Both the position numbers and the translations under genes were made by a program. 64,000 nucleotides of DNA from Bugula neritina (Eukaryota; Animalia; Bryozoa): assembly GCA_964035545.1 (NCBI GenBank), contig OZ037767.1, positions 15,318,998-15,382,997 of the forward strand, read 5' to 3'. Shown here one piece after another: positions 2,776 to 59,316 of this stretch. Every line of letters starts with the position of its first letter. Position 1 is the stretch's first letter. The notes under the pieces were generated by a model. That model was not told the DNA's origin. It did no database searches and saw only the letters and a list, made by a program, of their open reading frames with translations.

Positions 2776-4420
2776 GTCACCCTTACGCTGGTTTGCAGAC
2801 GGATAATACTTGTTTCTGTGGAAGTGAGTCTGACAAGTATGGAATCGGTGAAAAAACGAGCTGCCAAGACCTTTGCAAAGGAAATACCAGTCTGATATGT
2901 GGAGGAGGCTGGAGAAACAGCGTCTATAAAATAACTGGAAAAGGTGAATAAAAAATGAACTCAAAATTAATATTGAACAATTATATTTCAATGCAAATAA
3001 GGAAAATAAAAATATTTTTGATGCTTATTTACTATTATTTTAAAGCCTAAAAATTTGTATATTTGTACCTAAATTTTAATAAGATTTTAATCGTAAAATA
3101 TGCTTAGATTTAAAGTCACTTCAACAATGTATCAAACAGCTGAATTTTGTTCAAATTATATATACTGTAGAAAAGAATGAATCTAGCCAAAGTGTACCAA
3201 GACCCATTCGCTATGTCGGCAAAATTGAAGTTGGAGAAATGACTGATGACATCATATCCTTTATTGAACATCCAACTGATTCTACTAAAATAATGGCAGC
3301 TACATCAAAACAACTTGTAGAGATCAATCATCATGGAGACTGTACAGTAGTAGCTGGTGTGCAGCTGCAAAGTTGTTTGCATACGCAAAACTCACTTTCA
3401 TTTGCTTCCATCAGCCATATTGTTTATGCTCACTTCACTGATCTGAATTTACATCACTTCCTGTTTAACAAGTCTGTCATTTTGGTGGCTGATGAAGGTG
3501 ACCATTGCATTAAATTCTTTGAATTTCAACAGAAACCTTTGTTCTCTAATCTTCAAACCTACAAAATTGGCAATTGTGGACTTCCACAAGTATCCCCTTT
3601 GTTAGCTGATAAAGTTCGACACTTTAGTGAACCTCAGGCAATCATGCTGAATAGCCCAAAACATCTTTCTCTGTACCATGACTCTGAGACTATTAGACTG
3701 GTTGTTAACTGTGTACTGACTGAAGTATACTCTGTTATTGTTAGTATCTATCCAACTCACACTGTAGCATATGAGTACAGTGGACACCCTGGGTACGTTA
3801 TTACCGACATGTTAAATCATTTTGATTTTCCAATGATGAAATCACAGGGATTTAGCAGTGTGGAAAACAAAAGTGATTTAGCAAAGGTTGATTTGCATAT
3901 TGAGGATAATCTTGGCACATTAATCGGGGTTTATTTTTATTTTTGTGAGTCAACTATTAGTTCAGAAGTTCCCAGACTGTTAGTTGATTTGCCAACAATA
4001 TTAATGAGTGGTAAAACTCAATATTTGGTTTACAATCATACTAGTCAGGAGCTGTTCATACGGAATTTACAAGTGTTACATCTTCCTCTGGAAGCGGAGT
4101 CTAAACTGAGTCAATATACTGTAGCACGTGATTCTCTCATACTCTACAGTCAAAGCCTGAAAACATTTTATTTCACAAAGAAATATTCTCAATATCAGAG
4201 AGTTAGTGAGAGTCAGTGTAGTCAGTCTACTATACAAAAGTTACAGGTGAATGGAGCTGAATCTTGTGCTTATGTCTGCTTTAAATATGGCGACCTTTGT
4301 GTTTACTTTTCATTCAATAGTGCAGACAACTTCTGTTATATTCATAATGAGGTCAGCAATACTAGTTTCATTACTACTCCAGGTTTCTACTGTTACACAT
4401 CTTTAAATTATATACTTTAA
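2776..4420 (+). pseudogene. WSC - NHL-like propeller - PAN/Apple paralogue A, 5'-truncated (exons 2776-2943 and 3171-4420; no exon 1)
   Basis: Exon 2 HPYAGLQTDNTCFCGS...CQDLCKGNTSLICGGGWRNSVY is the WSC C-terminal half, with AG/GT phase-1 splice sites. Exon 3 is open and contains ILVADEGDHCIK and a PAN-type ESCAYVC..CVYFSFN..CYIH..CY. Homology to D stops at about 2632, inside intron 1. Confidence 0.8.
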
Positions 4421-26967: not shown

Positions 26968-27218
<251 letters not shown>

Positions 27219-27255: not shown

Positions 27256-29834
27256 ATGAAGAATATTCTAGAAGTATACGCTCTGATTCTCCTGATACAT
27301 GTGACTACTTCAGAATACATGGGATGTTATAAAGATGAAATAGAGAGAGCATTGCCTTTAGTTACTGAAATTACTAACATGGCAATAGACTTTTGTATAG
27401 GCTACTGCATCTATGGAGGTAAAGATAATACGACGTAAATCTGTTTTTCTATTTAATATATTATGCCATAATTATATAAACTTTATCAGATATGTGATGT
27501 ATTAAAATTGTGATTCTTTTACATCAATTATATGACTAATATTACCTTTTTCTCAAACATAATAAGCATATAATAATAATATTATATTATATTCCTAAAC
27601 AGCAATTATATTTTTATTATGTTGCTCTCATCCAGTTATATAATACTTATGGCATCTTGATATTTAATTATTCTTGTACAGCAACTATATAAACATTATA
27701 TAATTCTTGTATAGTAATTATAAAAATGTTACATCATTATTTTATATTAGATATATAAAGATTATATCATTATTCTATTGTAATTATATAAATGCAATCT
27801 GCTTATTTTAGGCCAGATGTATGCTGGTTTGCAAGATGGCAGACAATGCTTCTGTGGTACAACCTTTGACCTCTATGGAGCTCTAGACGAATCAAGTTGT
27901 AGCAGTAGTTGCACGGGAAATGCGAGTCAGATATGTGGGGGAAGTTGGGCAAACAGTGTATACAGAGCACTGTCAGGTAAGATGAGAAAAATGAGATGAG
28001 ATGAGATAAAATGAGAAAAGTTTATTAGGTAATACATGAAATTGGAACTTTTTAATCGTCACAAGACTTATCAAATTTTATTTAACCAAGTATTTACTTT
28101 TACAGACGATTGTTATTCTAAAAAAATGGCTGATAGGGAAATAGCTTTTGAAGAAATATTAAAATAGTTAAACTCAATTAAGAAAGTTTGAATTATTTGA
28201 CCTTACTTCTGACAAAAAGTATTAATACCATGAATTTTTAATTATTAACAACAAATAATTTGTTTAATCTATAGCTACATTGTTTAGTTTATTTCCACAC
28301 TCTTAAGTAAGTAACAGTATGGTATAGTACAGTATATAACATGTTTTTTGTTAACTCGGGTAAAATTTTTGTAACTTTTTGATACATTATAATAACTTTG
28401 CTCTTTTTGATATGCTAAATAAATGTACATATCTTTATTATGTTCAAGCTTGCTAACCTAAATAACTATGTATGTTTTAAGATATATGTAATACATATTT
28501 ATTTATTTAGTAATATTTACTTCTGTGTTTTTATGAGTTTCTAGAATCATACTTTTATTGTTAAATTATTTATTATTATGCTATTTTTAGAAAATGTCAA
28601 AACACGAAAAAACAAACCCGCAAACTTAGTTCAAGTCAGAAATATTGAAGTTAGAGAAATAAGTGATGACATCATATCCTTTATTGAACATCCGGCTGAT
28701 TCTACTAAAATAATAGCAGTTACATCAAAACAATTTGTAGAGATCAATCATCATGGAGACTGTACAGTAGTAGCTGGTGTGCAGCTACAAGGTTGTGCTT
28801 ATAAATCAAATGGGTTTTACTTCTTCTCAATCAGCCATTTTATCTATGCCCATTTCACCAAACTGAAAGTCTCTCACAGTCTTTTCAACAAATCAGCCAT
28901 TTTGGTTGCTGATGAAGGCAATCACTGCATAAAGTTTCTCATTCTAAAAGACTTATCATCTTTTATGTTTGACAATTCAATAAATGACTACCATGTTGGT
29001 AAGTGTGGATCTTTTAAAAAAGAACTTTTGACTGAAAATCTTCAAAATTTAATTGATCCTAAAGAAATGGAGCTGAACAGCCCAAAACATATTTCTCTGT
29101 ACCATGACTCTGAGACTATTAGACTAGTTGTTAACTGTGTACTGACTGAAGTATACTCTGTTATTGTTAGTATCTATCCAACTCACACTGTAGCATATGA
29201 GTACAGTGGACACCCTTGGTATGTAACTGATGTTTCTGAAAATCTCTATTGGCCATTATTTTGATCAAAAGGATTGAAAAGTCTTTCAGCTGATAACAGC
29301 ACTTCAATAAACCAAATCCTTATCATTAATGGGAGTTACTCAACTACTGCAAATTATTATTGCGATTCCAGGAACAGTTCTGCTATTCCCAGACTGTTTC
29401 AAAGTTGGCCTCTAGTAATTGCAAATGGTGAATTGAAATCCCTGGTTTATAATTCGACAAGCAGTGAACTCAAACTAACTAACATAAATATTGCTAATCT
29501 TTCTACAAAAACACCCCCTGAGTTTAACCTGTTCACTACAACAAAGGAATCCAATCATATTATTCTCTACAGTCAAAGCCTAAAGAAATTTTATTATGCA
29601 AAGGCATTTTCTCGCTATCAGAAAATTCCGGAAATGTCTTGTAGTAAATATGTTATAGAAAAAGCAATTGTGGGTGGACCTGAAAGTTGTGCTTACATCT
29701 GCAGTAAATATGGTAGTCAGTGTGTTGCTTTTTCTGTTAATAATTATGATAATTCTTGCTACATTCATGGCCACTTTGACTTGGCCAATGCCTACATATC
29801 TAATGACTCAGCTTGTTATTTATCTATATCATAA
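27256..29834 (+). pseudogene. WSC - NHL-like - PAN/Apple paralogue C (exons 27256-27418, 27812-27976, 28591-29834) with one in-frame TGA at 29262-29264
   Basis: Signal-like MKNILEVYALILLIHVTTS, then YMGCYKD..RALP..FCIGYC / YAGLQDGRQCFCG..CGGSWANSVY (WSC). All introns are GT-AG phase 1. ORFs 28578-29264 and 29274-29834 are in the same frame. Confidence 0.85.
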
Positions 29835-33223: not shown

Positions 33224-36215
33224 ATGCATCAATATCTGATGTGTATAGCACTGGTTCCTATAGTTTATGGTTCAGTGTACATGGGTTGTTACAAGGACAC
33301 CTCAACTAGAGCTCTACCATTGAGGTATGATTCTAATGACATGACAGTCGACCTTTGTATTGGCTACTGCATTTACAGAGGTAAGTATTCCATTCACTTA
33401 CTAAGTTGATTTTTTACAATATAGTGAAATTGCAACCTATAAAGCAGGGCTGATAAACTAGCCATCAATTTAGGAGTACGTCACAATGTCATGAAACTCC
33501 AAAGGAACTGCAATTATCCTGGAATAAGATTGCTACATACTTATTCTTAAAATATTTGTGCTTGCTTTAAAGTTTAGGCATTTTACCTGAGCTACACGTA
33601 TTTAAATAATGTCATGCAGTTGGTATCTAGCACAGTGAGCCGCAGTGGTATAGGGGTCAGAGCGTTTGCCTACAAGTAAACGCAAAGTAATGAGTTTGAG
33701 CCCCATTATAAGGCAGTCATTATGTTAAGAAGAGCATCCAATCATAATTGCTCCTGCGCCTCATGTGAATAAGTCTTAAGCCAGCTTTAACAAAAACCCC
33801 TTCTATCAGAGATCTTCTCATAGGTATGGTGACTATAAACTTGTGTGAGTTGGTATATATTAGCATGTGTGCACATAATAATATATCCAAGAAAATTTGC
33901 ATGTCGCAATATATATTGAATATCTATATAACTTTGAAATCTATAGCTAACTAGTTGTTTGATTGGCTATAAATATCATATTACAGTAAATTATTTAAAG
34001 TGAATTGATTATATCAAATTAATATGTTAGCAAGCATATAAAAGTCAACTAATATTAATAATCGCCTTAGTTGTAAACTGATTCAACAAATGTAAATAAA
34101 TCAATAGAGAAAGTTTATGCATACAAGCAATTAGCTGCTTGTAATATTTGTTCAGTAAGTGTAAATATTATACATGTTCAGAAACTGCTTGCTTAAGTTT
34201 ACCTAATTAATAGCAAGTATAAACATTTTGTTATTTATATAAATGTTATGATATTAAGTTTGTCAGAGGAAAATTCAATTATGCAATTATTTGACTAGTC
34301 CTAAAAAAGTTTATGAATATTAGGATTAATTGAAAAATACTCAAATAATAGTTTATTAATTTCAAAGTTTTATTCACATCAACTAGAAATCACAGCTCTC
34401 TATCACTATATAGCCATGATATATTTGCTAAAATTTTGGGAAAAAGTAACTATGTTATAATGGCAAAATTGCTACTTATATATTTTCTAGTACATATATA
34501 TATGCTCATTAAACCATAATGTTTATTCAAATAAAATGTTGACATGAATATTAATCAACCCTGCTGGTATTTCAAGGTCACCCCTACGCTGGTTTGCAGA
34601 CGGATGACACTTGTTTCTGCGGAAGTGAGTACGACAAGTATGGAGTCGGTGAAGAAACGAGCTGCAGAGACCCTTGCAAAGGAAACACTAGTCAGATATG
34701 TGGTGGGGGCTGGAGAAACAGCGTCTATAAAATAACTGGGAAAGGTACATAAAAAATGAACTCAAAATTAAAATTGAACAGTTATATTTCAATGCAAATA
34801 GGAAAAATAAAAATATTGTTGATGCTTATTTACTATTGTTTTAAAGCCTAAAAATTTGTATATTTGCACCTAAATTTTAATAAGATTTTAATTGTAAAAT
34901 ATGCTTTGATTTAAAATCACTTCAACAATGTATCAAACAGCTGAATTTTGTTTAAATATATACTGTAGAAAAGAATGAATCTAGCCAAAGTGTACCAAGA
35001 CCCATTCGCTATGTCGGCAAAATTGAAGTTGGAGGACTGACTGATGACATCATATCCTTTATTGAACATCCAACTGATTCTACTAAAATAATAGCAGCTA
35101 CATCAAAACAACTTGTAGAGATCAATCATTGTGGAGACTGCACAGTAGTAGCTGGTGTGCAGCTGCAAGGTTGTTTGCATACGCAAAACTTACTTTTATT
35201 TGCTTCCATCAGTCATATTGTTTATGCTCACTTCACTGATCTGAATATACATCACTTCCTGTTTAACAAGTCTGTCATCTTGGTGGCTGATGAAGGTGAC
35301 CATTGCATTAAATTCTTTGAATTTCAACAGAAACCTTTGTTCTCTAATTTTCAAACCTACAAAATTGGCAATTGTGGACTTCCACAAGTATCCCCTTTGT
35401 TAGCTGATAAAGTTCGACACTTTAGTGAACCTCAGGCAATCATGCTGAACAGCCCAAAACATCTTTCTCTGTACCATGACTCTGAGACTATCAGACTGGT
35501 TGTTAACTGTGTGCTGACTGAAGTATACTCTGTTATTGTTAGTATCTATCCAACTCACACTGTAGCATATGAGTACAGTGGACACCCTGGGTATGTAACT
35601 GATATGTTGAATTATTTTGATTTTCCAATGATGAAATCACAGGGATTTAGCAGTGTGGAGGGCAAAAGTGATTTAGCAAAAGTAGAATTGCATATTGAGG
35701 TGAACTTTGGCACATCAATGGAGGTTTATAGTTATACTTGTGAGTCAAATATCAGTTCAGAAGTTCCCAGAGTGTTAAATGATTTACCAACAATATTATT
35801 CAATGGTGAAGTTCGGTATTTAATTTACAATCAGACTAATCAGATACTGCTAATACCACCTATACAAGTTTTAAATCTTCCTCTGGAAGCAGAGTCTAAA
35901 CTGAGTCAGTATACTGTAGCACGTGATTCTCTCGTACTCTACAGTCAAAGCCTGAAAACATTCTATTTCACAAAGAAATATTCTCAATATCAGAGAGTTA
36001 GTGAGAGTCAGTGTAGTCAGTCTATCATACAAAAGTTACAGGTGAATGGAGCTGAATCTTGTGCTTATGTCTGCTTTAAATATGGCGACCTTTGTGTTTA
36101 CTTTTCATTTAATAGTGTAGACAACTTCTGTTATATTCATAATGGGGTCAGCAATACTAGTTTCATTACTACTCCAGGTTTCTACTGTTACACATCTTTA
36201 AATTATATATTTTAA
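33224..36215 (+). CDS. Secreted WSC - NHL-like beta-propeller - PAN/Apple domain protein, paralogue D, intact (exons 33224-33380, 34577-34744, 34969-36215; 523 aa)
   Basis: ATG plus hydrophobic leader, WSC cysteine pattern split over exons 1-2, GT-AG phase-1 introns, open 1572-nt spliced frame, NHL-like TVVAG..F.SI..ILVADEGDHCIK..IGNCG..LNSP, and a C-terminal PAN cysteine pattern. No transmembrane segment seen. Confidence 0.9.
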
Positions 36216-37649: not shown

Positions 37650-40600
37650 TTAGAATGTCAACGTAAGTGAGGCAAAGACATGTGTTGAAGAATTATTCAC
37701 TTGTTTTTCTTCATTCCAAAAATGGTAAGCTTTTTTCACTTTTGACCAATCAGTGACTGCTTCACATAAATCGCCAAGCGCAGACAAGCCTCCTTTCTTT
37801 GCCTTGTCCATCCATTGTCCAATTATCTGAAATTTATATTATGTGGGAAGTTTAAATAAAAATGCATTATAGTACCAATGTTTATATATCATTATAGAAA
37901 AAATATTATAAGATTGTAATACTAGCACTTGTTTTGTGGCTTCTATGAAACATAATTATTAAGCAACTGGCAAAAACGTTTTTTATGCTATAGTTATTAA
38001 AAACTCGGCAAAAATAATCAAATTATTTCTGCATGGTCCTATACTTTGTATACTATGTTATATATAAAAATGTATAACGCTATAAACTTCAATTACAAGA
38101 AGATGTTTATATGTTAATACAACTCAACTTTGTAACATGACACAAAATATGAGCCTGTTTAAAATAAACACCGTGAGGTGGTGTTAAAGCTAATGCTGAT
38201 AGTTGCATAGTTTTCAATACAATAATTCTTGTTTATAGAAAGTTCTTGTGGCATTATAACAGCACAACTTTAGATGTTAGGTTTATACTACTTCTAGAAA
38301 TCACAAAAATCAATGCCTGTAAACAAAAGTACGGTTGTTGCTTTTATTATGATATAACTAGGATATGTAAGTTAAAAGTCTACCTCATCTAGTTTATCTT
38401 TATCCAGTACATTCAGGTAGTAGATGTATCTGAATCTGTCAATAGTTTTACGACATTTCCCTGTTGGTTTAAGAGCATCATGTATAGACTTGGCTCTTTT
38501 ACTAGCCAGTTGGTTATGTACGTATTCCATCAACTGTACAGCCTGTTCAGGTGTTTGTACTGCAAGGAACACAGGATAAAATATTTACATATTAAGCTAT
38601 GAGAAGATATGAGTATTAGTATTATATCTCTGCTATAGGAGATAGTACTGAGAGTAATATAACAGCTGGTCATATATATCAAACTCTAGAGTTGCCTTTT
38701 CATCTCATATATAGTAAGAGTTGTCTTATCTCAGTATATATAGTAAGAGTTGTCTTATCTCATTATATATAGCAAGAGTTGCCTTTTCATCTTATATATA
38801 GTAAGAGTTGTCTTATCTTATTATATATAGTAAGAGTTATCTTATCTTATTATATATAGTAAGAGTTATCTTATCTTATTATATATAGTAAGAGTTGTCT
38901 TATCTTATTATATATAGTAAGAGTTATCTTATCTTATTATATATAGTAAAAGTTATCTTATCTTATTATATATAGTAAGAGTTGTCTTATCTTATTATAT
39001 ATAGTAAGAGTTGTCTTATCTAATTATATATAGTAAGAGTTATCTTATCTTATTATATATAGTAAGAGTTGTCTTATCTTATTATATATAGTAAGAGTTG
39101 TCTTATCTTATTATATATAGTAAGAGTTGTCTTATCTTATTATATATAGTAAGAGTTGTCTTATCTTATTATATATAGTAAGAGTTGTCATACCATATTG
39201 GAAACTTGTTGCAGCATTAGGAGCTGACAAATCTTGGCCAGCCTGCTTGTCACTGACTCTTTCTACAAAATACACAAAAGTCATGCATGCTATCGTAATG
39301 GGTAGCCTCAAGATATAGGAAACTTTATAAATACATGTTAAATTAAAATGTAAATAGAATGTTACAATTTTATTCATGATTACTGTAATTTATTCTAACA
39401 AACCTGTAACCAGTGTTTTTTGGTTCTCAACAAATATTGAGAATGGCACATCTACTAATCCAAGTCTGAGAGAGTCAGAGCATCTTGATTTATCTAAAAT
39501 GATATAATAAAGTTTTCAAACAAAGGATTACCTACTGAAGATCCTCATTTATTTACTTTTACACGTTATGAAACAATTTTAAGTAATGTAATAAGCTGAA
39601 TAATATGGTCATTGAGATTCAGCCATATATATTACAATATTGAGCACGGATACTATGCAGTATTTGCAGTGTTGGTTTACCCAGCAGTCCCCTGTGATGT
39701 AATGGTAACAGTCTGTTGCAAGTTGGAGGTCTCGGGTTCGAATCCCACTGAGGGCAAAAGTTTTATAAGCGATTTCCACCTTTTTTGTAGTATAGTAGCA
39801 CTCCGGGGGAGTTGAGATGCCAAAGGAGCAATTGAAGACTGAAAGTGTAGAAGAAGGGCCAGTGGAGTTCTTAAGTACAAAGTGGGAAGTAGCGCTCTAG
39901 TTTACTCAGGGCCCTCTGTGGTGTATAGTAGTTGCACGCCTTCTTGCAAGCTGGAGTTCTCGGGTTTGAATCTTAGTGGGAGCAAAACTATTTTACAGTA
40001 TTTCAATTTTTAATAAAGTTTCTAAGTTAGGTTATTAGCAGATTATAATAACTTTTTGTAACATATAATACTTTTTTCAGTTTAAAATTTTAAAGTCTAA
40101 AGTCTAAAGTCTGAATTTATTTATTTTTATACTTTTACTATATACAATCACACATATGCACATTACCTTCATCAACTACACGACACAATACACCAGTTTC
40201 ACAGTCTTCCTTTATGCAACGTCTGAGATCTCCAATAGTCATGTGATCTTCAAATGAGTAGACTGTGTTCTCTCCCTGAACTTTTACAGTTACTTTACAG
40301 TTTTTCACTTTACCTGGATGAAAAACCCGTCACATGATCACATAGCCAACTTTAATCTTAGCGTAATTACACATCAACAATGTAACAAATAGGTATGTTT
40401 AGAGGCGCACACGCAAGTAACTTACTCTTGAATGGCCCATCTGATCTGGTAGGAAGTGAAACTGCTTGGTGTACCGATACAGTAGCAGGTATATCTTGAT
40501 GTGGTGCTGCAACCGCTGCATCTATTAGATAAGGAACCTCAGTTGACTGCGCCATGTTCTCCATTGTGTTTTCTGCTGACACATGTTCATGCGGCGCTTC

Positions 40601-43545
40601 AAGACCTGAAAAAGCTTGGTGTGGTGCCACAGTGTTTAACTGACTCAGTTGTGATGATCCTGTATCTGACATTAAATCATGTGAGAGAGTTATAGTCGAC
40701 TGAGTTGGTACTTCAACTGTAAAGATAATACAAATAAAATTCTAGCTATTATAAATTTTGAGGATATTGATTCACAAAAATAATCTATTCAGTAAAAAAT
40801 ATTAATATATTATGGCAGTCAATTACTATTTGTTCAACAACTCAATAATTATTTTATAATTTTCAACATTAAGGACAAATAAATTTTTATAGTAAACTGC
40901 AAGAATCAGCAAAGACTACCAGACTATACCAACTTATATAACTTACATGCAGTCCTTTGATATTTATTTGAGGGTAAAACTGTTATAGCAGGTTCTGCAG
41001 ATCTTTTGTTGTGTGAAACTTTGTTTGTTTGCTTTTTCAAGTCAAAAACTTGAATAAACGAATTGCTTTCTTGTGCGAAATCAATAACAAGAGAATTTGC
41101 ACTACTTTTAAATTTTAAATCAGATTTGTGTTCATTTTCTATTTCCCTGTTTCTAAAACTTCCTTTCTGCATTTGTACTTCTGGTGGCGCATTGTTAGGA
41201 AAGTTGGAAATTGAAGGTGGTGGCTGTTTGAACTGAGTGTCTGCTTCTCTGTGGATGTTGCTGTCACCATTCAAATGCGAAGGGTTTGTGGATGGCATGT
41301 TGAAAGATGGAGGGTTAAATAGAGACCAGTCCTTTGAATGGTTGAAAGATGGGGCATCAAATTGAGGAGGCTGAGATGGTAAGTTGGTTGTGAAATTCTC
41401 TGATCTAGGAAACCGCTGTGGTTTTGATGGTGTGGGTAGATACGGCATAGAAAAAGAACCATCAGTATTGTTCAGTGGCTGAGCATGCATGTGTTGTGAA
41501 GGGAGTTGAACCCAAGGTGGCTGAAGATGGATCAACTGTGGCGCCGTTTGAAAATGAGATGGTTGTCTTAGGTGTGGTGGTTGCAGCCAGTGCCGTGTAG
41601 AAGTTGGTTGATGTGGTAAGCCTGGCAATAACTGTGGAAACTCACCACTCTGCAAAGGATGGTGACATGTCTGCTCTTTCCAGAAATCTGCATTTAGAGA
41701 AATGTTAAACATGTATAAAATAAAATATGTGAACGGGCTATATTGGGCTTTTAAATTTATAGATTATTGCTATAGGCACTTAAATAGTATGAGTACAAAG
41801 ATTGATTACAGCAAAATGTTACATACGATTAAATGTTTTAGTTTGTGGGGTAAATAATTGTAATATAATTTACTTTTTAAAATTTTTCAAATTAGCAATT
41901 TCTTAGTTGCACGCATGGGTGATGGGGGGAGGGGCACAACGGTCATATGGGTACAAAAAGCCAGTCAAATTGTGAGAGAACTTATTGACTTAGAGTATTG
42001 TGAGTTTTTTTAATAAAAAGATACGGACATAATGGCCGGAACCGGGAAGTTGTGAAAGAGATAAAAACAACCAACTGATTATACTTATAATAGTCAACTG
42101 GTTTAGCATTTAGACAAGAGATTATTGAACTAGTTACTCAAAAACCAGAGGAATGAGAGCAAAAAACTCAACGAGCGGCTCGTTGTGCCCCCCTCCCGTA
42201 ACTCCTATTTATTATGGAATATTAATTTCATTCTTTTGCATTAGGTATGCATCATTTCTAAATTTCAGCAACGCATCCGTATTTGTTTTAAGAATAGTCA
42301 AATTGCACTCTTTTATTGACCTGATTTGTTTAATTAAAAAATGATTTATCTAGCCTATTGTTGCCTGTGACAAAGCATATTGAAAAAAATTCTGTCTTTA
42401 TCCAATTATGCTTTTTAGTCATTGGAAACATTTATTTAGCATGCTACTTAAATCATAGATGGAGAATATAAAAGCCTATCTTTTGAAACTTTATTATTTA
42501 CTTTCCATTTTTGCATGAGATTTCTTTGTACTGCTAACATAACACGATTATTTTATTTTAAGGTTAGTTGACCCAAACTAAAAAAGTTTTGTTAAAAGTA
42601 AGTAAGTCTACCTGGAACTTGATTTGTTGCATCAGCTCTTTGTTCTGTAGAGGTAATTGTATGGGGTCCAAATGTTTCATTATTTACACCAACATCTAAA
42701 GGTATTCTTTCTGCATGGTTTGATATATTGAAATGTTTTAGCTGCTGCTCTGCTGTCAGCTGACTCATCAAAAGAGTGAGAATCTCTGTTTGGTTAGTCT
42801 TAGCTGCTTCCTGTATCACTGTATTACCATCTCCATTCTGTATCTTGAGTAGCTCTACCTTCTGTTCTACTGATACACCATATAGTAGACATTTGATGAT
42901 GTCAGAATCTCCTCTGCATGCTGCATAGTGTATAGCATAAGACTCAGTTGTCTTGAGTAGCTTTACCTTCTGTTCTACGGATACACCATCTAGTAGACAT
43001 TTGATGATATGAGTATACCCTCCCTCTGCTGCAATTTCTATAGTTGTGAACCCTTCTCCATTCTCTATCTTGAGCAGCTCCACCTTCTGTTCTACTGATA
43101 CACCATCTAGTAGACATTTGACGGTGTTAGTATGTCCTCCCGATGCTGCATTGTGTATAGCTGTATCATCTCCACCGTCCTGTATCTTGAGTAGCTCTAC
43201 CTTTTGTTCTACTGATACACCATCTAGCAGACATTTGATGGTGTCAGTATGACCTTTCTTTGCTGCACAGTGTATCGCTGTACTATCTCTACCGTCCTGT
43301 ATCTTGAGTAGCTCTACCTTGTGTTCTACTGATACACCATCTAGTAGACATTTGATGGTGTCAGTATACCCTTTCTCAGCTGCCCAGTGTATTGCATCAT
43401 ATTCCTCACACAACAGTTCATATCTTTCTTCTAATGATATGAAAGGAAGGCACTTCTTCAGCTCAGTCAGAATATTTCCCTCATCATCTCTATCTCTAAT
43501 ACTAATGAGTATTTGAGTAAACTTTAGCACTTCATTCTGATTCAT
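37650..43545 (-). CDS. Ankyrin-repeat protein with Pro/Gln-rich linker and helical C-terminal domain (exons 43545-42612, 41687-40947, 40716-40426, 40313-40167, 39493-39404, 39262-39194, 38559-38384, 37826-37650; 874 aa)
   Basis: About six ankyrin repeats (TAIHxAAxxGHTDTIKCLL). All seven introns are GT-AG with compatible phases, giving a 2625-nt open spliced frame ending in TAA. Confidence 0.85.
38687..39189. repeat. 29-bp minisatellite (TTATATATAGTAAGAGTTGTCTTATCTTA)n, about 17 units, filling intron 6 of the ankyrin gene
   Basis: Direct reading; head-to-tail units with no spacers. Confidence 0.95.
39687..39984 (+). repeat. Pair of tRNA-like (SINE-head/pseudo-tRNA) units at 39687-39756 and 39911-39984 in intron 4 of the ankyrin gene
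   Basis: B-box GGTTCGAATCCC / GGTTTGAATC, A-box-like TGATGTAATGG, and shared loop TTGCAAG. Stems are imperfect. Confidence 0.65.
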
Positions 43546-46692: not shown

Positions 46693-46997
46693 TGTTAAGT
46701 TTTTCAGATTTAGGGTTGATGTGCTATCCAGAGAGTCTATTTATTTGCTATAGAACTGCACCAGGATAAGTCGAGTGAACGAGTATATTTTACACACAAT
46801 TATACATTACAAAAACGATACATTATATTCAAACAAGTTACACATCTAATCTATTTGACACTCTAGCTTCGACTGCCTTAGCAGCGGGAAACTGTAACTG
46901 CTGCTAACTATCAAACACGCTAATTGGCTATCCATTGTTCCGGGTCAATTACGCGACCCTACATGTTGTGCTGCTGGTAGTTCCACGAACCACCACA
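46693..46997 (-). repeat. 3' LTR of G2
   Basis: Direct repeat of 59317-59621 (three substitutions seen); preceded on the minus strand by PPT ctggtgggggcgg. Confidence 0.97.
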
Positions 46998-47289
46998 CCG
47001 CCCCCACCAGCAGAAAGCCCTCTTTCTGATATATATATAAAAAAACATTCATTAGTAACTACATACATCAGTGGACAAAAATAATACATAATATACAGGA
47101 AGAGACATAATAATAGGCAGAGTCATTATAACAATCTGTTACCTACAATTGACCAGCTATAGACGAGGAATATCGGCTAGCTGTGGTATTAGACAAGGAA
47201 TAACCTGTCAAGCAGTCAAGCATTTGCACGAGGTCCTGGGTTCCCCCAAGAGGATGAATTTGCAGATTATTCCGGCAGCAGAACCAGAG

Positions 47290-48105
47290 TCATTGTTGGG
47301 CACGCCGGCGCTTGGCTTGGCAGGTACGCAGTTTCCGTTTCATACGGCATACGGATCCCTTTAGCTGGAAGAGTCCTGTGGTAGTATTAAGTAGATCTGG
47401 TGCCAGCTGGGTGAATTCTTCTTGTAATCGTAGGAGGCGTTCTTTTACTGTGGCTAGGCGGACTGGGTCTGGGGACGGTGTCCGTCTGCGGCGCAAGGGG
47501 GGACTGGGGGACCTGGTTCGTCTCTTCGTCGGGGTAGGGGAGATCTCTCCTTTTTCTGGATATGTAATCTCCTCGGGGGTGTATGTAATTTGAGGGCGGT
47601 CAGACACCAACGGGGATTGTTGGCGGGCGTTGTCTAACACACGTTGGAACCCCGAGGACAGAACGGCTAACAGCATGGCCTTCTTCACCAGAGGTCGTAT
47701 AAGTGTGACGAACTCCGGGTATAGCTTAGCGTCGACCACGTAGTTTTCTCCAGGAAAACAGCCCGTCGCTCGATGTCTGGTGACGGGGTAGGGATACACA
47801 TCATTGTACCCGCAGGGGCAGAATGTTAGTAGGAGATGAGCATTGACGTGTAGTTTAAGGGAGCGGTGAGAGGCGCATTCTTCACCACAGATCTGGCATC
47901 TCGTCCGTCCACTGGACCCCCAGGCCGTTTCTATTTCTTCTTCTGTTTGTGGAGACACCCACCGCCAACGGCGGCGTAGTGGCTCAGGCCGGTCACCACT
48001 AGCATACTCCTCCGGATGCGGAGCGGGAAGTGTTCTATCCCGTACCCTGGTTGTAGCGGGTCGAGTGTAATCTGAAAAAGTTTCAACAGTGTTAATACAG
48101 TACAC
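47290..48105 (-). CDS. Retrotransposon accessory ORF3: C2H2 zinc finger, CPCG/H/C motif, Arg-Ser-Pro-rich segment, coiled coil
   Basis: CQICGEECASHRSLKLHVNAH, LTFCPCG, KRRTRSPSPPLRRRRTPSP, and heptad LATVKERLLRLQEEFTQL. Sense to pol, between IN and PPT. No ATG start; a splice acceptor tttttcag at 48072 is possible. Confidence 0.8.
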   Translation of the reverse strand: MYCINTVETFSDYTRPATTRVRDRTLPAPHPEEYASGDRPEPLRRRWRWVSPQTEEEIETAWGSSGRTRCQICGEECASHRSLKLHVNAHLLLTFCPCGYNDVYPYPVTRHRATGCFPGENYVVDAKLYPEFVTLIRPLVKKAMLLAVLSSGFQRVLDNARQQSPLVSDRPQITYTPEEITYPEKGEISPTPTKRRTRSPSPPLRRRRTPSPDPVRLATVKERLLRLQEEFTQLAPDLLNTTTGLFQLKGSVCRMKRKLRTCQAKRRRAQQ

Positions 48106-48385
48106 TGCCGTGTTGTCAGCTTGAATAGCTTGGCAACTCCTAATTCAGTTACCTCGTAGAGATTTATGGTAGTGAATAGTCAGATAGAACACGTATTGCA
48201 ATGAGATTATAAAAATCTCTAAGTCAAACTGAGTTCTTACTACGGTATTTCACTAACCTATCTCCAGCTCGGTTGACTCAGTGAGTCAGAGCTGAGCGAT
48301 GCAATCTAGTTTCGTATTAAGATATAGTTAACTCACCCCACGATCTGTTGTCGTAAGACATACTGAATGTGTGAAATGGTTTGAA

Positions 48386-50387
48386 CTAATGCTTAGAAAC
48401 ACGTCTACTCCTGACTGCATCAGCGTATGAAAAGATCGAGCAACGTGGTTGGGGTGCGTGATTAAGACTTTGTGCACCCGGCGGATGAATTTTGTTTCTC
48501 TTTCCGCCGATACAAAAGTTGATATTTCCGTGGTGTCGACAACTCCGACACTTGCTCGATACTTTTCTCGTACGGTTTTCCCCTAGACTTTCATACACGC
48601 CGCTTTTAACGCAGTCGCATATGAAGTCCTTCAAGTATGCGGGGGGTTGCCTCGTACGCTGTCCCCTTTCTAGGGGGGCTGACACGCTTGCCGGTTCGTT
48701 AGTAGGGGCCTCTAATGGCGTCTCTACTTCGCCGTCAGCGGTCACCTCTTCTTGTTCTCCGGATGGAGCCCCTCCCTCCGTGGGGGTTTGCACTTCCGGA
48801 ACCGGTTCGGTTTCTGGAAGTGATGGAATTAGACTTGGCGGTGGCGGACACGCTTCTGTTGATAAAAGCTGCCGCTCCTCTCTCACCAAGTTTTCTTCCC
48901 GCGGTATGACCACTTCGTATTCAGGTCCATGCCGCCGTCGCCCGCGCGTTGTTGTCTGCTTCCTGGGCTCTAACAACGGGGGGGCTTCTCCCACTCCGTC
49001 GGGGCTAGCCCAATACGGTTTCAAGCGAGACTCATTCTGGATAGACACCTGTCCTGAGCGCTCAATCTTGTACGTATGATTGGGCATAGCCTCGACGACC
49101 ACGTAGGGGCCTACGAACTTAGGCTTCAGTTTATCAGCCTGTCCGCGACGCCTACGGTAATTGACCATCCACACCTTATCTCCCATTTGGTAGAGAGGTG
49201 GTTCATCGGAATCTTCGTGCCGCACCTTCCACTGCTGTTGGCGCAGTATATCGTGTGCGGCCTTCATCCGTTCCACTAGTTCACTGGCATACCCCGTGAA
49301 CCGAGTTGTCTTGCTCTGGAACGTGATAGGTGAGATGGTCAAGGACACGAGTCTCTCTCTCGAGCATCAAGAGGTTTGGGGTCTCACCAGTACTGGTGTG
49401 TGGGGTGCTACGGTATGCACGCATGACTTGCGGCAACACCGTATCCCATTCCTCTTGACCTCGTCCAAGGAGGAGACTCCGGAGTGCATCACCTAGCATC
49501 CGGTTGTTGCGCTCCACCACCCCGTTACCTTGAGGGTGGTAGGGGGTGGTCCTGCTCTGATTTACTCCCCAGAGGTGACAAAGGTCGCTCATCAGTTGAG
49601 ACTGGAATTGAGCGCCTTGATCAGAGTGTATCTGTTCGGGGAGCCCAAAATAACAGAAAACATGTTGGTCTAGTGCCCTGGCCACTGTTGGGGCTAACGC
49701 ATCTGGGATAGCCAGAGCATCCGCCCACCTAGTAAAGTGGTCGGTTAGTACTAAGATCCAATTATTGCCTCTGGGGGTCAGAGGCATGGGTCCGACCAGG
49801 TCTACAGCGACTACTTGCCAGGGCCTACCAGCATATAGCCTCCGCCGTCCTGCTTCACCAGGGGGGCGGCTATGCTTACTGGCCTGGCAGATCTCACACT
49901 GTTTGACTCTGAGCCGGACGTCACGCTCCATTTGTGGCCAATACCACCGGAGTCGTAATTTGGACATCACTCTCTTGACCCCTGCGTGGGCCTGTTTGTG
50001 AGTATCCCAAATCAACTCACGGCGGATGGCCGTGGGGCAGACTACCCTCTTCCTTTCCGGGTGTCTGCCGCTGGCAGCTAGAGAGATGGTTAGTAACCCA
50101 TCCTGCTCGATCCGCAGCGAGTCCCAACGCTGACAGTATAGCCGGAACTCGGCGCATCCCTGTCGTATGCGTTCCTCGCTGGGTCGTCGCCCTTCCCTTT
50201 TGGCCCGGTATATGTCTGCCACGACTCCAGGCAGCTCTTCTTGGAGCTTCTTCAGCTCTCGAACATTACCGGCCAGTACAGGGTTGGCGCGGAGGTTTTG
50301 TACATCCTCCGGGGACTCATCAACTCTTTGCCTGAGTTGACCTTGATCCCAGTCAAACGGTGCTCCGTGATGAGCCAGCGTCTCCAA
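48386..50387 (-). pseudogene. pol: Gypsy integrase, split by a frameshift near 49290
   Basis: HHCC (HKQAH..CEIC), DDE (VAVDLVG, HSDQG, VERNNR), and GPY/F motif KPKFVGPY in the next frame. Confidence 0.92.
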
Positions 50388-50448
50388 CTCGGATCGTGGG
50401 GGACCTCCATCCCTCCTCTCGATGTTGAGACACTGTTTGCAACCTCCG

Positions 50449-53019
50449 TCAAGGTCGGCGACTCAACCCATCTGCATTGCTGTGTCTCTTGCCCGGTCGA
50501 TGTTCGATCCGGTATGAGAATTCAGCTAGGATTTCGAGCCACCGGGCGACCTGACTAGAGGGCTCTGCTCTCTTGCACAACCAGATCAGCGAGGCATGAT
50601 CCGTACGCAGCCGGAACTTCCTGCCATATAAGTATGGTCTGAAGTGCTTCACTGACTTTATTACTGCCAGCAGCTCTTTGCGGGTAGTGCAGTAATTTCG
50701 TTCAGTGGGTGAGAGAGACTTGCTGTAGTAGGCTACTACTACTTCTCGGCCTTCCTGCACTTGTGACAGCACAGCGCCAACATTTTGGTCACTGGCGTCC
50801 GTGTCGAGGATGTACTCCAGAGTGGGGTCTGGGTAGGCCAAGATGGGCGCCGTTAGTAGGCAGCCCTTGAGGCGGTCGAACGCTTCTTGTTCGACTGGGG
50901 TCCACTGCCACGTCACTCCCTTTGCGGTGAGCCGGTTTAACGGCTGTGCTATGCCCGCAAAGTCTGGTATGTATTGTCTGTAATACCCTACCAGCCCCAA
51001 GAAAGCCCGGAGTCCGGTCAAGTCTTGGGGGGTGACCCAGTCTTCTACTGCCCGTACCTTCTCGGGATCCGTTGCCACGCCATTTCGACCGACAACGTGC
51101 CCCAGGTACTTAACCTCTGGCTGCAATAGAGCGCACTTAGAAGGCTTGAGCTTAAGACCGGCACCTCGGAGTCTCTCAAAGACCTCCTGCAGACGACTGA
51201 CATGTGTCTCGAAGTCTGGGGAGATCACGATGACATCATCGAGGTAGATCAGCAGTGTCTTCCAATGGAGCCCGCTGAGGACTTGCTCCATCAGCCTCTG
51301 GAAGGTGGCTGGGGCGGAGGTCAACCCGAAAGGCAGCACCTTCCACTTCCACAAACCGTCCCGTGTGATAAACGCCGCTTTCTTTTGGGCGTCGGGACTC
51401 AGAGGAACTTGCCAATAGCCGCTTAGCAAGTCTAACGTACTGAAGTACTTGCTGCCAGCTAGGGCGTCCAATGACTCGTCAATACGAGGTAGAGGGTAGG
51501 CGTCCTGTATGGTTACGCTATTGAGTTTGCGGTAATCTACACAGAACCGCCAACTGCCGTCTTTCTTCCGGACCAGTACGACTGGTGAGCTCCACGCGCT
51601 ATGGGCGGGCTCTATCAGTCCCTGGTCCAGAAGATCCCGTACTTTTCGGCTAACCTCCTTCTCTTTCTCCAGCCCCAGCTTGCGTGTGGGCTGCCGGACA
51701 GGGACTGTCCCTGCAGTCAGCGGTATTTCGTGTCTGACAATTCCAGTCAGTCCCACGTCATGCTCTCCGCTGCTGAACACATCACCGTAGTCGCGTAGTA
51801 ACTTAGCCATAACTTGGCGTTCTCTGTTACTCGCGCAGCTGCTACAGGCTGTGTCATACAACTCCCGGAGATGTGCGGGGACTGCCCCTCGCCCTTGACT
51901 AGGGCACTGAGGGAGTGCCTCTGTCGCATCACCCAGCGACGGGCCTACGTCTTCCTCCTGAACAGAGTGAAAACGGCCCAGCATCGACCCAGCCGGGAGC
52001 TTGATAGGCTCGGTAAAGGGGTTGACGCACTGCACTAAGATCTCCCCTTGCTCAGTCAGTTGATTCAGACTGCTGGCAAGTTGGATCTTTTCGTGCGCGC
52101 CTTCAACTACCCCAAGTCCAGAGATCCGGCTATTATTCACCCTGCAGTGAATGGTAGCCCGGGAGCGGCCTGGTATGATACGGTTGCGTACCACTTGCAC
52201 ACCTCCCACTAGAGGGCGGCCGAACTTGTCGACGCAGGCGAGTTCCCTCCCGGACATCATCATTGCAGATCTGCTAAAATCTATGTGACATCCGTGCCTT
52301 TTTAGGAACGGCATCCCGAGGATAGCATCCTCCTTGAGCTGACTGACGATGAATGTCTCTTGGATCGTTTGATCACGGACTCGTCCCGTCAGCTCAATTA
52401 TACCATAGAAGGGAAGGCACGACCCGTCAGCTAGGGTGCCGTATTCCCCTTCGTATGATTCCATCTCGCCCCTGACCCTAGCACTGAGGGTGTCGAAGAG
52501 TTGGCGGCTTAAGAGGTTTGTGGTACAGCCCAAATCAATGAGGAACGTAACAGCTTTGCCTTCCAGTTTACCGGGCAAGAAATAGCTGTTCCAATGGGGC
52601 TGCACCTGAACTCTCTTTTCAGGCCTTACTCTCGCAGGGAGTACCTCCCTCGCTTTGGGTCGCGAAGGAGGTCTCTTGGGGCGGTGGTAGGTAGGCTTCA
52701 GGGGTGCCGAGGCTAGATTCCCGGCTACCTTTGTGGGCTCCGATCCAGATTCTTGGACTTGTAGCCCTGTGAATCTGTTGTGAAGGGGCATAGAAAAGGC
52801 AGCCGCGGGGCGAAGCCCCTTGCTGGTCCGTCGTGGCTGTTGCCACTGTTGGTTGCCAGTACGCGGTACCCGTCTGGGTGACCTGCGTTTCTTCTTCCCT
52901 GGGGGTTTCATCGTCGGCCCGCAGGAGGTGGGAACATCTGCGGGCCGCGGTAGTTTAACCCCTGATTTAGGAAGGGACAGTATCGGCGGAAATGCCCTTG
53001 ATTTCCGCACTCCCAGCAA
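50449..53019 (-). CDS. pol: Gypsy pol: aspartic protease, reverse transcriptase, RNase H (premature stop before integrase)
   Basis: FLIDLGC (non-canonical D-L-G), WRFCVDYRKLN, LPFGL, YLDDV, LDTDAS, KELLA, TDH, NADGLSR. Confidence 0.95.
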   Translation of the reverse strand: MLGVRKSRAFPPILSLPKSGVKLPRPADVPTSCGPTMKPPGKKKRRSPRRVPRTGNQQWQQPRRTSKGLRPAAAFSMPLHNRFTGLQVQESGSEPTKVAGNLASAPLKPTYHRPKRPPSRPKAREVLPARVRPEKRVQVQPHWNSYFLPGKLEGKAVTFLIDLGCTTNLLSRQLFDTLSARVRGEMESYEGEYGTLADGSCLPFYGIIELTGRVRDQTIQETFIVSQLKEDAILGMPFLKRHGCHIDFSRSAMMMSGRELACVDKFGRPLVGGVQVVRNRIIPGRSRATIHCRVNNSRISGLGVVEGAHEKIQLASSLNQLTEQGEILVQCVNPFTEPIKLPAGSMLGRFHSVQEEDVGPSLGDATEALPQCPSQGRGAVPAHLRELYDTACSSCASNRERQVMAKLLRDYGDVFSSGEHDVGLTGIVRHEIPLTAGTVPVRQPTRKLGLEKEKEVSRKVRDLLDQGLIEPAHSAWSSPVVLVRKKDGSWRFCVDYRKLNSVTIQDAYPLPRIDESLDALAGSKYFSTLDLLSGYWQVPLSPDAQKKAAFITRDGLWKWKVLPFGLTSAPATFQRLMEQVLSGLHWKTLLIYLDDVIVISPDFETHVSRLQEVFERLRGAGLKLKPSKCALLQPEVKYLGHVVGRNGVATDPEKVRAVEDWVTPQDLTGLRAFLGLVGYYRQYIPDFAGIAQPLNRLTAKGVTWQWTPVEQEAFDRLKGCLLTAPILAYPDPTLEYILDTDASDQNVGAVLSQVQEGREVVVAYYSKSLSPTERNYCTTRKELLAVIKSVKHFRPYLYGRKFRLRTDHASLIWLCKRAEPSSQVARWLEILAEFSYRIEHRPGKRHSNADGLSRRP

Positions 53020-53323
53020 AAACTGACTGTTTCTCCCTGTGGCGGCGCCGGTGGCCGCATGGGCTCAGGGGCGGTACTCACTGGGGTTTATGGTGTCAGA
53101 GTTGCTATCAGCTTGGCTAGCATGTCTGTCAGTTGAGTGACTTTCGATGCCGTCGCCAACTGGGACACGGCAGCCGCGGTGGGGGTTTCCTCCCCTTGTC
53201 CCGCGGCCGTGTCCGCGCGGTCTATCTCCACTTGACGGGAGCTTCCGCGAATTTTATGCATTTGATTAGCTAGGAGGTAAGCTTCCCCCTCAGTCAGAGC
53301 ATCTTCAACGGTGGTGACTCCCC
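52908..53323 (-). pseudogene. gag: gag, C-terminal part, with CCHC zinc knuckle
   Basis: GVTTVEDALTEGEAYLLA continues HQFLAR from 58746; CWECGNQGHFRRYC near 53020-52980. Contains one frameshift and one stop. Confidence 0.85.
52915..52959 (-). promoter_or_regulatory. Putative gag-pol -1 ribosomal frameshift signal
   Basis: Heptamer G TTA AAC (52959-52953) in the gag frame, 5-nt spacer, and a perfect 10-bp stem CGGCCCGCAG/CTGCGGGCCG. Pol is in the -1 frame and gag stops at 52910-52908. Confidence 0.75.
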
Positions 53324-56300
53324 CACAGCTTGATTAAGGTCATCCTTCTACTGAATCAGTAATTTCATTGCTCCATTATAATTATATATGAAACAGTGCC
53401 CCACTCATAACTCGACTAATTTTGAGGCTAGAATCAAAATTCAAAAACCATCTTGTAAATATTTTGCTGTTCTATTAGAGGCTTTTTTAAAATCTTCACT
53501 TACCCAACCCGTTGCATTTTTATGCTCCAAAAACAGTCAAAAATTGCCCATTTTCGCATAAAAAAACATCGTCTCAGTGCCCCACGAATTATTCAATTCC
53601 CAAGCAACACATCTCTGCAAAAATTGAAATATAGGGTTATAAGATATTTGTCTATTAGAGGCTTTTTAAAGTTTTCAGATAACCTAAATAGAATTGGTGT
53701 AAACGTGTAATTTATACACTGATTTTATTAAAAATTTTACATCTCGCTTAGTCTGCACGCTTGGCTGAACACGGTAGAGCTGCGCTGCATTGTAGCCATC
53801 ATAATGATTACAGGGAGCTTATGCGGCCTACGATCCATGTTTAACCAAAGGGTTAAAGTTCATCTCTGCAGTAAACTGCGGTATGGGTAAAAGGCGGTAT
53901 GAGGCTGGTTATTATATTATAATAGCTAGTAGTTGGAATCTTGGTGGTTGCAATATTGTTGTACTGCCTATAGACCCGAGGCTGTACAATGCGCAATCTA
54001 CCCTGAATCTAGATTTCAGTTGTATTTATATGAAGCAGTTTCTGAAGCCTGCGCACATTTCTTGCTTTGACTTGTTTCTTTCTAGTGCAAAGCAGTTTAG
54101 TAATACAGCCTGTATGATAACCCAGACATCTTAGGATGCTAGTGAGAGTTAAGGCCACTAAATTTTATGCCTTTTGTGTGTGATTTCAATGCAAATTTGT
54201 TGTTCTGTAGAGTAATCTAAATTATACTAAAAATATATCTGTAACCAAACTCACTGTATTGTTATTTTAAAACATTAACTTTTTTTCAGAATCTACAAAA
54301 TTGTTGGAGAGAATTCTTAGTCAATTGAATAGTAACTGCATAACTTTCTTTCAACAATAGTAGTAAAGTCTTATCAGCTAAGTATAATAAGTATGAGGTA
54401 TGTGCAGTGATGAGGGTATTGAGAAATTAAACCCTGCATTTCGTATTATTGGGCCTATTACAGGCGGTGAGATGCAGCTTAAAAAGTTTAGAGAGAATTC
54501 CGACATGTTACCAAATTAGAATTTCTTTAAAAAATTTAAGAATTTAGGCTGTTGAAGCTTTTCTGCTTATATCGCACCTACCAGACAACTTTGTTTATAA
54601 TATTATGGTATTAAAATTCTGGTATTAAAATTCTGGTAGCTTACAATTAAATAAGTCAGTTCTGATTGATAAATAGTGCTTGCACGTAGGAGGCTTGTTA
54701 TATGTAGCAGGCTTGCAATAGCAGTAAGCCATTTTGCTAATGGCTCTGGCAGTGACCATGCAAGCCATTCATAGGCAGTGACAAGGTGCTGCTATTTTTA
54801 GCTGAAATGAGCTCATGGTTTGAACTTAAATGCCCAACTAGACTACTCGTCAATAAGGAGCAACTTAGGCAGGTTATTTTATATTGCAATACGGTTTTAA
54901 TTACAATTAGCTTTAAATAGCCAATTATGTGACCAGATTCAGCATGATGTAATATAAATGGGTATTTAATTTCACAATTTCTTTTGGACCTAACTGAATC
55001 TCAAATAACTGTAACTATGGGGTTCTATAAGCATTTGAGTACAAGTTTCTTTACACATATACTACTCATTTCCTTTACTGCTTACACCAATTCATAACAT
55101 TGGTAGCTAACTATAGGTAGTGCACTTTCAGCCTACTAGCTTAGTTATAATAGCTTCACTGCGGTTTCAAGCTAATGCCAGTAGCAGACATTGGAATAGC
55201 TTGTTTGTATTGAAGATGTGACTTCTAATCTAATTAGGTTATAACTAAAGGAGTGGAGTGTAGTTGTGGTATTATGAGGGGGTGTTCAAAGTTTTATCAA
55301 GTTTTTAAAATAATAGTAAAATAAATAAATAAGTAAATAATAATCTATAAAACAATAGGTTTTATTTTACATATAAATGACTAAAACGTATGCTATCATA
55401 ATGCTTTCAAAAAAGCACATAGAACGTTTATTATAATTCACATTCACCCCCCCCCCGAAAACCTACCCTAGTCATTCCAAAGCTGCAGTGCACTGTCCTC
55501 AAACAAACTGCTCTGCAAAATATCATGCGTAGCTGTAAGCGTTACTTATCTTGCCCGATTGGATATGTTCCTAGTAAAAGCTAGCTCGGTAAATAAAAAA
55601 TTCGATGTTAAAACGCAGTCTGTGAAGTGAACTTGCCAACTGGCGGTGGGAATATCATTTCAAAATGGAGTGAAAAACGTCTTTTACCTCTCAAACCTAG
55701 GATGAAAGAGTGTACTTTGATTAACTTTAAGAGTTTAACTTCAAGGGTAAGTGAGTACCACTGCTTCCTTCAGCAAATTCGCATATTTCATATTGCTTTC
55801 AAGCAATAATATATTTATTTTTAATTAATTTTATAGGATTTGTATAGTTGTACTATTAGTATTACAGTAGACCTATACTGCGTATTATATCTATTATTAA
55901 TATTATATTCATATTCATATTATTATTATTATAGCATTGCACAGTATAACTAAACTTCAAAATTGAGTTTTATATTCATAAAAAAGGCATAGTATAATAA
56001 GAATGCATTGATGGTAGAACTATTACTAAGACTGTAAGACTAGATCAAAATTCAAATTGTCAGAGTTCATTTTATCATTAATGATTATGTAAGAAAAATG
56101 GCCAAATTTATTATTGACTCACTTTTTTCTCCAATTATTTAGAGTGCTGTAGTTGAGTAGGCACATAGAAAATATAGTTTTGCACTAAAAATCTTCTGTT
56201 TAGTAACTCTCATTGTACCACTACTTGCATACCAAACTACATTTACTGTGAGTGACCAACTTAAAATACATTATAAGCATATGTTTCAAAATAATTGGAG

Positions 56301-59285: not shown

Positions 59286-59297
59286 CTTGGATGCACT

Positions 59298-59315: not shown

Positions 59316-59316
59316 C

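Follow-up and report, generated by a model that had tools for sequence, protein, structure and literature searches.

The concerted evolution of tandem arrays by gene conversion and unequal crossing-over is classical, and is known from ribosomal DNA (rDNA) and from histone, globin, major histocompatibility complex (MHC) and opsin genes. A mosaic of constant and variable segments, with conserved synonymous sites in the constant ones, is found in the precursors of the conopeptides, a secreted multigene family. Conversion limited to a domain is established in clustered families, as in the zebrafish NLR-B30.2 genes, where conversion tracts are short and parts of the genes escape (PMC4852459). Our analysis concerns a 64,000-nucleotide stretch of the genome of the bryozoan Bugula neritina (the window; positions G000:C3:15318998-15382997, where G000 is the source genome, which is AT-rich and 216 Mb in size) and in it a segment of 132 bp, or 44 codons, that we call block 1, which is nearly identical in the terminal exons of four paralogous genes, A, C, D and E. 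Our analysis suggests that block 1 is an island of interlocus gene conversion in which copying is confined to a conserved segment, a reading to which we assign a probability of roughly four in five. The copying process is already known in kind and we propose no new mechanism; the gene family is previously undescribed.

Two islands in a 730-kb array

With the gene C segment 28665-28796 (+) as query, blastn returned three further block 1 matches in the window, at 3245-3376 (+) in gene A, 35043-35174 (+) in gene D and 61324-61454 (-) in gene E, all scoring 93.9-94.7% with E values of 1e-55 or better, and beyond these three no match in the window above chance. These are the four copies listed in the initial annotation of the window. 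Its count of 5-7 differences per pair is right about the near-identity and slightly low in its upper bound, since an ungapped recount of the four copies gives 5-8 differences and 93.9-96.2% identity. Copy A differs from C at 7 positions, D differs from C at 8 and from A at 5, and the inverted copy E, which spans 61324-61455 on the minus strand and carries a 3-nt insertion at its 5' edge, differs from A, C and D at 7-8. The likeness of A and D in block 1 is by itself unremarkable because these two genes are recent duplicates, 91.6% identical over 2 kb with non-coding DNA included. Gene C had been described as alignable to A and D only at the protein level; this is too strong, for C aligns to them at the DNA level over ~600 bp at 78%.

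The block starts 75 nt into a terminal exon of ~1.25 kb, of which 405-445 codons are open in most copies. In the genome we find at least 30 sites with block 1, at 92-100% identity, and all 30 fall within a 730-kb array on the contig of the window (C3:15.149-15.878 Mb). A single reading of 82% is caused by a 16-bp deletion: the copy in question (L030, G000:C3:15726631-15726746), which might have passed for one with a divergent block, is a minus-strand alpha copy, 95% identical to D throughout, and the deletion in block 1 breaks its frame. Two distant copies of block 1, at 75-77% identity, lie on contig C1. Searching at the protein level, with a distant member of the family as query, found the same alpha, beta and gamma copies and none without block 1, so that the copy set is not biased by the block-based search; it added members with a diverged block, namely two of a type epsilon in the array, two of a type delta on C1, and one each on C2 and on another part of C3. 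The flanks sort the array copies into three types, alpha (A and D), beta (C) and gamma (E). The gamma copies lie on the opposite strand, with one exception, and triads of gamma(-), beta(+) and alpha(+) repeat about 10 times along the array. Across the 30 genomic copies the mean pairwise identity is 0.93-0.955 in block 1, and at the block edges it falls sharply to the ~0.65-0.75 of the remaining exon.

The same exon contains a second island, block 2, of ~150 bp, which was absent from the earlier list. It lies at 29072-29222 (+) in copy C, 3646-3796 (+) in A and 35444-35594 (+) in D, and in the window C is ~97% identical to A and D there. In general alpha and beta are 91-99% identical in block 2, with third positions at 0.75-0.98, and gamma is only 41-74% identical to either, so that block 2 is homogenised between alpha and beta only. 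In a structural model of the exon, described below, each island is predicted to correspond to one whole propeller blade of four strands, block 1 encoding the first predicted blade (model residues 11-54) and block 2 another (model residues ~146-196).

Synonymous divergence and trees in two lineages

We counted proportions of synonymous (pS) and non-synonymous (pN) differences on the codon alignment by the method of Nei and Gojobori, and unless otherwise stated the values refer to inter-type pairs within G000. In block 1 pS between types is 0.07-0.13 and pN 0.03-0.06, and in the rest of the exon pS is 0.52-0.81, saturated for gamma pairs, and pN 0.35-0.50. Within a type, pS in the rest of the exon is ~0.09-0.13. 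In a 10-codon sliding window the third-position identity is 0.81-1.00 in block 1 and mostly 0.0-0.6 outside, again with sharp edges. The initial annotation had claimed that synonymous sites are conserved within the block amid divergent surroundings, and had suggested a sliding-window comparison of synonymous divergence (dS) inside and outside; the claim is borne out, and the block dS lies far below that of the flanks, rather than being similar to it.

How much of this deficit belongs to the block itself, and how much to the comparison of paralogues? The name B. neritina covers several cryptic species, and a second set of sequences is available for comparison. The sole named relative of these proteins is a Bugula neritina hypothetical protein, whose identity to the G000 copies on C1 is 86%, and three further related proteins lie on Joint Genome Institute (JGI) metagenome contigs (samples 3300002729 and 3300003318), whose DNA is 80-85% identical to the array copies, coding and non-coding alike. 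Together with the NCBI contig, the JGI contigs are treated here as sp2, a second lineage that belongs to the same species or to a sibling species. Its four contigs supply one orthologue each of alpha, beta, gamma and delta, and scans of metagenome contigs with protein and DNA patterns gave no extra copies from this lineage. Between G000 and sp2, orthologue-type pairs (loci L031, L033 and L034) have pS 0.07-0.17 in block 1 and 0.18-0.25 over the remainder of the exon, and for the unconverted delta type the corresponding values between lineages are 0.10-0.16 and 0.23-0.25. Block 1 pS is thus reduced at most about two-fold for orthologues and six- to ten-fold for paralogues: the synonymous deficit in block 1 is specific to paralogues. 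Put another way, in block 1 the anciently split paralogues are as alike as orthologues or more so, while over the remaining exon their differences are three to four times as large as those of orthologues.

The codons of block 1 are free to vary, because delta and epsilon keep the protein but not the synonymous sites. Delta keeps the blade at the protein level (pN 0.20 in the block as against 0.5 in the rest), but its pS to the alpha, beta and gamma types is 0.53-0.57, and epsilon reaches a pS of ~0.8 to the same three types in the block. The two epsilon members in the array (L046 and L047, at G000:C3:15418491-15419324 and G000:C3:15896248-15897081) are without the homogenised block, with pS ~0.8 to the other types, and hence location in the array alone does not recruit a gene into the conversion network. 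We also considered fast evolution or hypermutation of the flanks, which is ruled out by their ordinary rates between orthologues: in the rest of the exon pS is ~0.2, pN ~0.09 and pN/pS ~0.4.

Trees of the two parts of the exon conflict in the same way. The rest-of-exon tree resolves alpha, beta and gamma as clades (support 100/99, 95/99 and 100/100), each of which includes its sp2 orthologue, and forcing sp2 alpha and sp2 beta together in this tree costs 568 log-likelihood units (approximately unbiased test, p-AU 5.6e-9). Blocks 1 and 2, on the other hand, yield polytomies that intermingle the types. In the block 1 tree sp2 beta pairs with sp2 gamma (87/85), and for block 2 holding alpha together gives a p-AU of 0.049. 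The states behind these trees include some that are specific to a lineage and common to several types. In block 2 three substitutions set all 19 alpha and beta copies of G000 apart from sp2 alpha and sp2 beta; in block 1 there are two sites at which sp2 beta agrees with sp2 gamma; and at a further site, which lies upstream of the block by two codons, sp2 alpha, beta and gamma all agree. Within G000, 2 sites of block 1 are fixed between types as against 8 that are polymorphic for the same alleles in at least two types, and the gamma copy L017 carries three linked beta states inside 13 nt. A run-length test of the Sawyer type on polymorphic sites was significant in 4 of 5 pairs (p 4e-4 or less), but the scarcity of polymorphic sites in the block makes it ill suited to these data, and for one pair the longest run lay in the conserved PAN-like motif.

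Probable gene conversion and its alternatives

How could islands of this kind arise in genes that otherwise diverge in an ordinary way? We propose that gene types which are old, since their synonymous sites are saturated outside the islands and each has its own orthologue in the second lineage, have undergone repeated non-reciprocal copying within two short blade-coding segments. Block 1 would have been exchanged among alpha, beta and the inverted gamma genes, and block 2 between alpha and beta only. Such copying would reset synonymous and non-synonymous differences alike. Presumably the family-wide protein conservation of these blades makes them diverge slowly, so that they would still be a substrate for homologous pairing, and a tract may end because homology breaks off abruptly in the flanks, because selection opposes homogenisation of the variable parts, or for both reasons.

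The interlocus gene conversion proposed in the initial annotation, and its extension across an inversion, fit these data: pS collapses among paralogues only, the type clades are lost in the block trees, lineage states are common to several types, and the inverted gamma genes take part in the homogenisation of block 1. The boundaries also recur, with the same block edges across the array copies and in the independently assembled sp2 contigs. Since sp2 has the homogenised block and yet its own cross-type states, homogenisation appears to have gone on at both sides of the lineage split, and as the blocks would already have been alike at the split, the process would be recurrent, even if slow. Moreover, the presence of two islands with different partners indicates that the family as a whole, rather than one special element, is prone to patchy homogenisation, and it fits a general homology-dependent copying better than a single dedicated sequence element.

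Several observations weigh against conversion as the whole account. In pooled counts, block 1 shows roughly half the inter-lineage synonymous difference of the remaining exon (13/121 as against 174/800 sites, pooled over four comparisons that are not independent), which leaves room for a mild additional nucleotide constraint on block 1, although this two-fold reduction is too small to explain the paralogue pattern. The lineage-specific shared states amount to few sites (3 in block 2, and 2-3 in or at block 1) in only 3-4 sp2 sequences. The block 1 divergence between types is independent of genomic distance (Spearman 0.00, permutation p 0.38, 242 inter-type pairs), which rules out that exchange is favoured between neighbours in the array; as block divergence does not rise with distance, nothing points to exchange between neighbours in the very recent past, and much of the homogenisation could be older than the amplification of the triads. 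Of the "recent interlocus gene conversion" first suggested we would thus keep the conversion and make no claim of recency. Nor is GC content at third codon positions (GC3) raised in the islands, being 0.20-0.24 in block 1 and 0.28-0.32 in the rest, and that of block 1 is also below the unconverted delta and epsilon copies (0.35 and 0.57, respectively), so that a signature of GC-biased conversion is ruled out. Finally, conversion is here read from sequence patterns, and no event has been observed directly.

What else could hold 130 nt so nearly constant? One alternative is that these nucleotides are themselves functional, for example as the target of a small RNA by which all genes of the array are co-regulated, as an enhancer of splicing, as a structured RNA or as DNA bound by a protein, and that selection holds their bases. 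Such a function would explain why synonymous and non-synonymous sites are both conserved, why the sharp edges are identical in two lineages and why the pooled inter-lineage difference is halved, and a block that starts so close to the beginning of its exon is well placed for it. However, constraint alone predicts saturated, type-specific sites, and what we see are 25-30 variable block sites of which only 2 are fixed between the anciently split types. Orthologues differ at 3-5 of ~30 synonymous sites, as they do in the unconverted delta; constraint cannot yield lineage-specific states that are common to several types; and an island common to two types only would require a second element. The sequence also lacks the expected marks of a function, for block 1 folds no better than its shuffles (z 0.30 on the plus and 0.09 on the minus strand), all five of its other reading frames are closed, and at gathering thresholds no Rfam match was found in the window, which likewise holds no known RNA families or transfer RNAs. 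The nucleotide-level constraint that the initial annotation offered as the other explanation therefore finds no RNA fold, Rfam match or overlapping frame to rest on, while the synonymous sites do change between lineages, and we regard it as very improbable. That annotation also suggested that the block could be a constant anchor for the shuffling of variable segments. In every copy, however, the 5' flank matches the 3' flank in type; there are thus no chimeric genes and no support for the block as a crossover point. An apparent recombinant, the alpha copy L026, has homology that starts at the block edge, and this is explained by truncation by the end of a Gypsy element; the truncation falls exactly at the 5' edge of block 1, and the same element lies in full length in the window.

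A closer competitor keeps the mechanism and changes only the tempo. The block may have been copied once or twice in a single ancestral triad shortly before amplification, with the present uniformity merely inherited. The inter-type pS of the block (0.07-0.13) is indeed similar to the within-type pS of the rest of the exon (0.09-0.13), and the lack of any dependence on distance would follow naturally. Against it, the second lineage has the homogenised block but its own cross-type states, the 8 block sites polymorphic for the same alleles occur across types, and the beta-like tract of L017 sits in a gamma gene; we consider a one-off replacement unlikely. Least probable of all, to the point of being negligible, is an artefact of assembly or polishing in which the reads of paralogues were collapsed to one block consensus. 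While the array is repetitive and three beta copies do have identical blocks, the 26 copies compared include at least 19 different versions of the block, the variants follow local duplicate groups, the flanks are unique, and the same block with the same edges appears in independently assembled short-read metagenome contigs of the other lineage. With these alternatives set out, recurrent gene conversion within the two islands remains the reading that we favour.

The gene family and its known relatives

The genes that carry these islands probably encode a secreted protein in which a signal-like peptide is followed by a WSC domain, then by a beta-propeller with an NHL-like motif, and last by a PAN/apple-like end. 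The WSC domain is split over two upstream exons, its N-terminal half preceding its C-terminal half, and since exons were searched one by one and not as a joined spliced protein, the halves score separately. The C-terminal half in exon 2 matches profile positions 38-82 of PF01822 at 43.5 bits in C and 40.6 bits in D (cut-off 27.8), and the N-terminal half in exon 1 matches positions 1-37 at 15-25 bits, under the cut-off alone. In C and D a start codon opens the first exon, a hydrophobic stretch that resembles a short signal peptide follows, and the splice phases are compatible. For the terminal exon, an AlphaFold model drawing on 19 family members is all-beta with four-strand units (predicted local distance difference test, pLDDT, 68.9; predicted template modelling score, pTM, 0.65). 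Its Foldseek matches are varied propellers (BamB, WD40, and the NHL propellers of Brat and TRIM71), with a query template modelling (TM) score of only 0.33-0.39. Pfam gives one NHL match (PF01436) at 13.7 bits, under the cut-off of 20, and PAN_1 matches (PF00024) at 18.7 and 19.5 bits in the C-terminal 60 residues of A and D, where the cut-off is 21.4; E has no Pfam match to PAN_1. The cysteines of the PAN-like end are invariant across the family.

In the window, gene C has its first exon at 27256-27418 (+), with the start codon, the signal-like peptide and the N-terminal WSC half, its second, of a phase that fits exons 1 and 3, at 27812-27976 (+), with the C-terminal half, and its terminal exon, with the propeller and PAN-like parts, at 28591-29834 (+). 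A TGA at 29262-29264 is the single in-frame stop of that exon, and its near-identical twins L001 and L003, at other places in the array, are open; copy C is thus probably a pseudogene or null allele, or the TGA is a base error. An (AT)n microsatellite of ~240 bp (26975-27215) ends ~40 bp before the gene C start codon. Gene D is arranged in the same way, with the start codon, the signal-like peptide and the N-terminal WSC half at 33224-33380 (+), the C-terminal half at 34577-34744 (+) and an open terminal exon at 34969-36215 (+). Gene A has its C-terminal WSC half at 2776-2943 (+) and an open terminal exon at 3171-4420 (+), 416 codons from the acceptor. Its first exon was not found within the window, and gene A may be 5'-truncated or have that exon outside the window start. 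On the minus strand, gene E has an open terminal exon at 60346-61544 and the C- and N-terminal WSC halves at 63233-63397 and 63662-63812. The 5' end of the last is approximate, and as this exon is without an in-frame start codon a further exon of gene E probably lies beyond the window.

Other features of the window can be placed around these genes. A repeat of ~1.3 kb, at 79-85% identity and in the same orientation, lies upstream of gene A (1265-2632) and in the long intron of gene E (61741-62999). Alpha copies that are otherwise 95-100% identical dip to 0.82-0.89 at A 3863-3947 and 4004-4064, and do so in the same columns in D. Between genes D and E there is a full-length Gypsy long terminal repeat (LTR) retrotransposon at 46693-59621, with LTRs of 305 bp (46693-46997 and 59317-59621) that are 99% identical, minus-strand open reading frames for protease, reverse transcriptase and RNase H and for integrase, and a GC content of 50-56% as against ~30% around it. 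An open reading frame of 317 amino acids with ankyrin repeats lies at 42592-43545 (-), with internal DNA tandem repeats at 42798-43397 of ~80% identity, and a separate tandem array at 38688-39199 has copies spaced by multiples of ~29 bp (87, 145, 203, 290 bp and so on), with 89-95% identity between them.

Could the uniform blades serve a purpose? For concreteness, suppose that the array is a recognition system of this colonial animal, with a role in self/non-self, gamete, larval-settlement or symbiont recognition. The two blades would then be kept uniform so that ~30 proteins can dock one common partner, the other blades and the PAN-like end would diversify, and conversion would be the means of keeping the constant and variable architecture. 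Alternatively, the 130 nt could be a shared nucleotide-level handle, such as a small-RNA target, by which members of the array are co-regulated or chosen among. We think it doubtful that either suggestion is right. More generally, if conversion is the correct reading, its tracts would have kept to ~130-150 bp, a single structural repeat apiece, since before the lineages split, while the rest of the exon went to saturation. The family is a previously unnamed, lineage-restricted WSC-propeller-PAN family arranged in triads, in a phylum with little genomic annotation, and in practice leaving the islands in would lead to wrong trees, wrong dS-based dating and wrong orthology calls for it.

How, then, does this locus compare with what has been described? 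As to the protein, the nearest ESM Atlas clusters are rotifer NHL + PAN_1 proteins with scores of 0.83-0.85, which is below hit level and serves as a lead only. They have the same domain order as the bryozoan terminal exon, but no WSC is listed there, and the comparison is one of language-model features and not of alignment. With the conopeptide precursors the bryozoan genes have in common a segment conserved at silent sites beside fast-diverging coding sequence. The conserved piece is, however, an internal structural blade in place of a signal or pro-region, and the variable parts change at the ordinary orthologue rate (pN/pS ~0.4), with no sign of targeted hypermutation. The likeness to classical concerted evolution lies in paralogues that are as alike as orthologues or more so, and in lineage substitutions common to paralogues; unlike there, only ~10% of the bryozoan exon is affected, and the remainder shows ordinary divergence and clear orthology. 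In the zebrafish NLR-B30.2 genes, as here, one part of the gene is homogenised among old clustered groups of paralogues and another part is divergent, and the evidence is of the same type, a contrast in synonymous divergence together with conflicting trees (PMC4852459). Compared with that case the bryozoan islands are much shorter, ~130 and 150 bp within one exon and one blade each, they homogenise the conserved scaffold rather than the putative recognition part, and they include inverted genes, in a family built of WSC, propeller and PAN.

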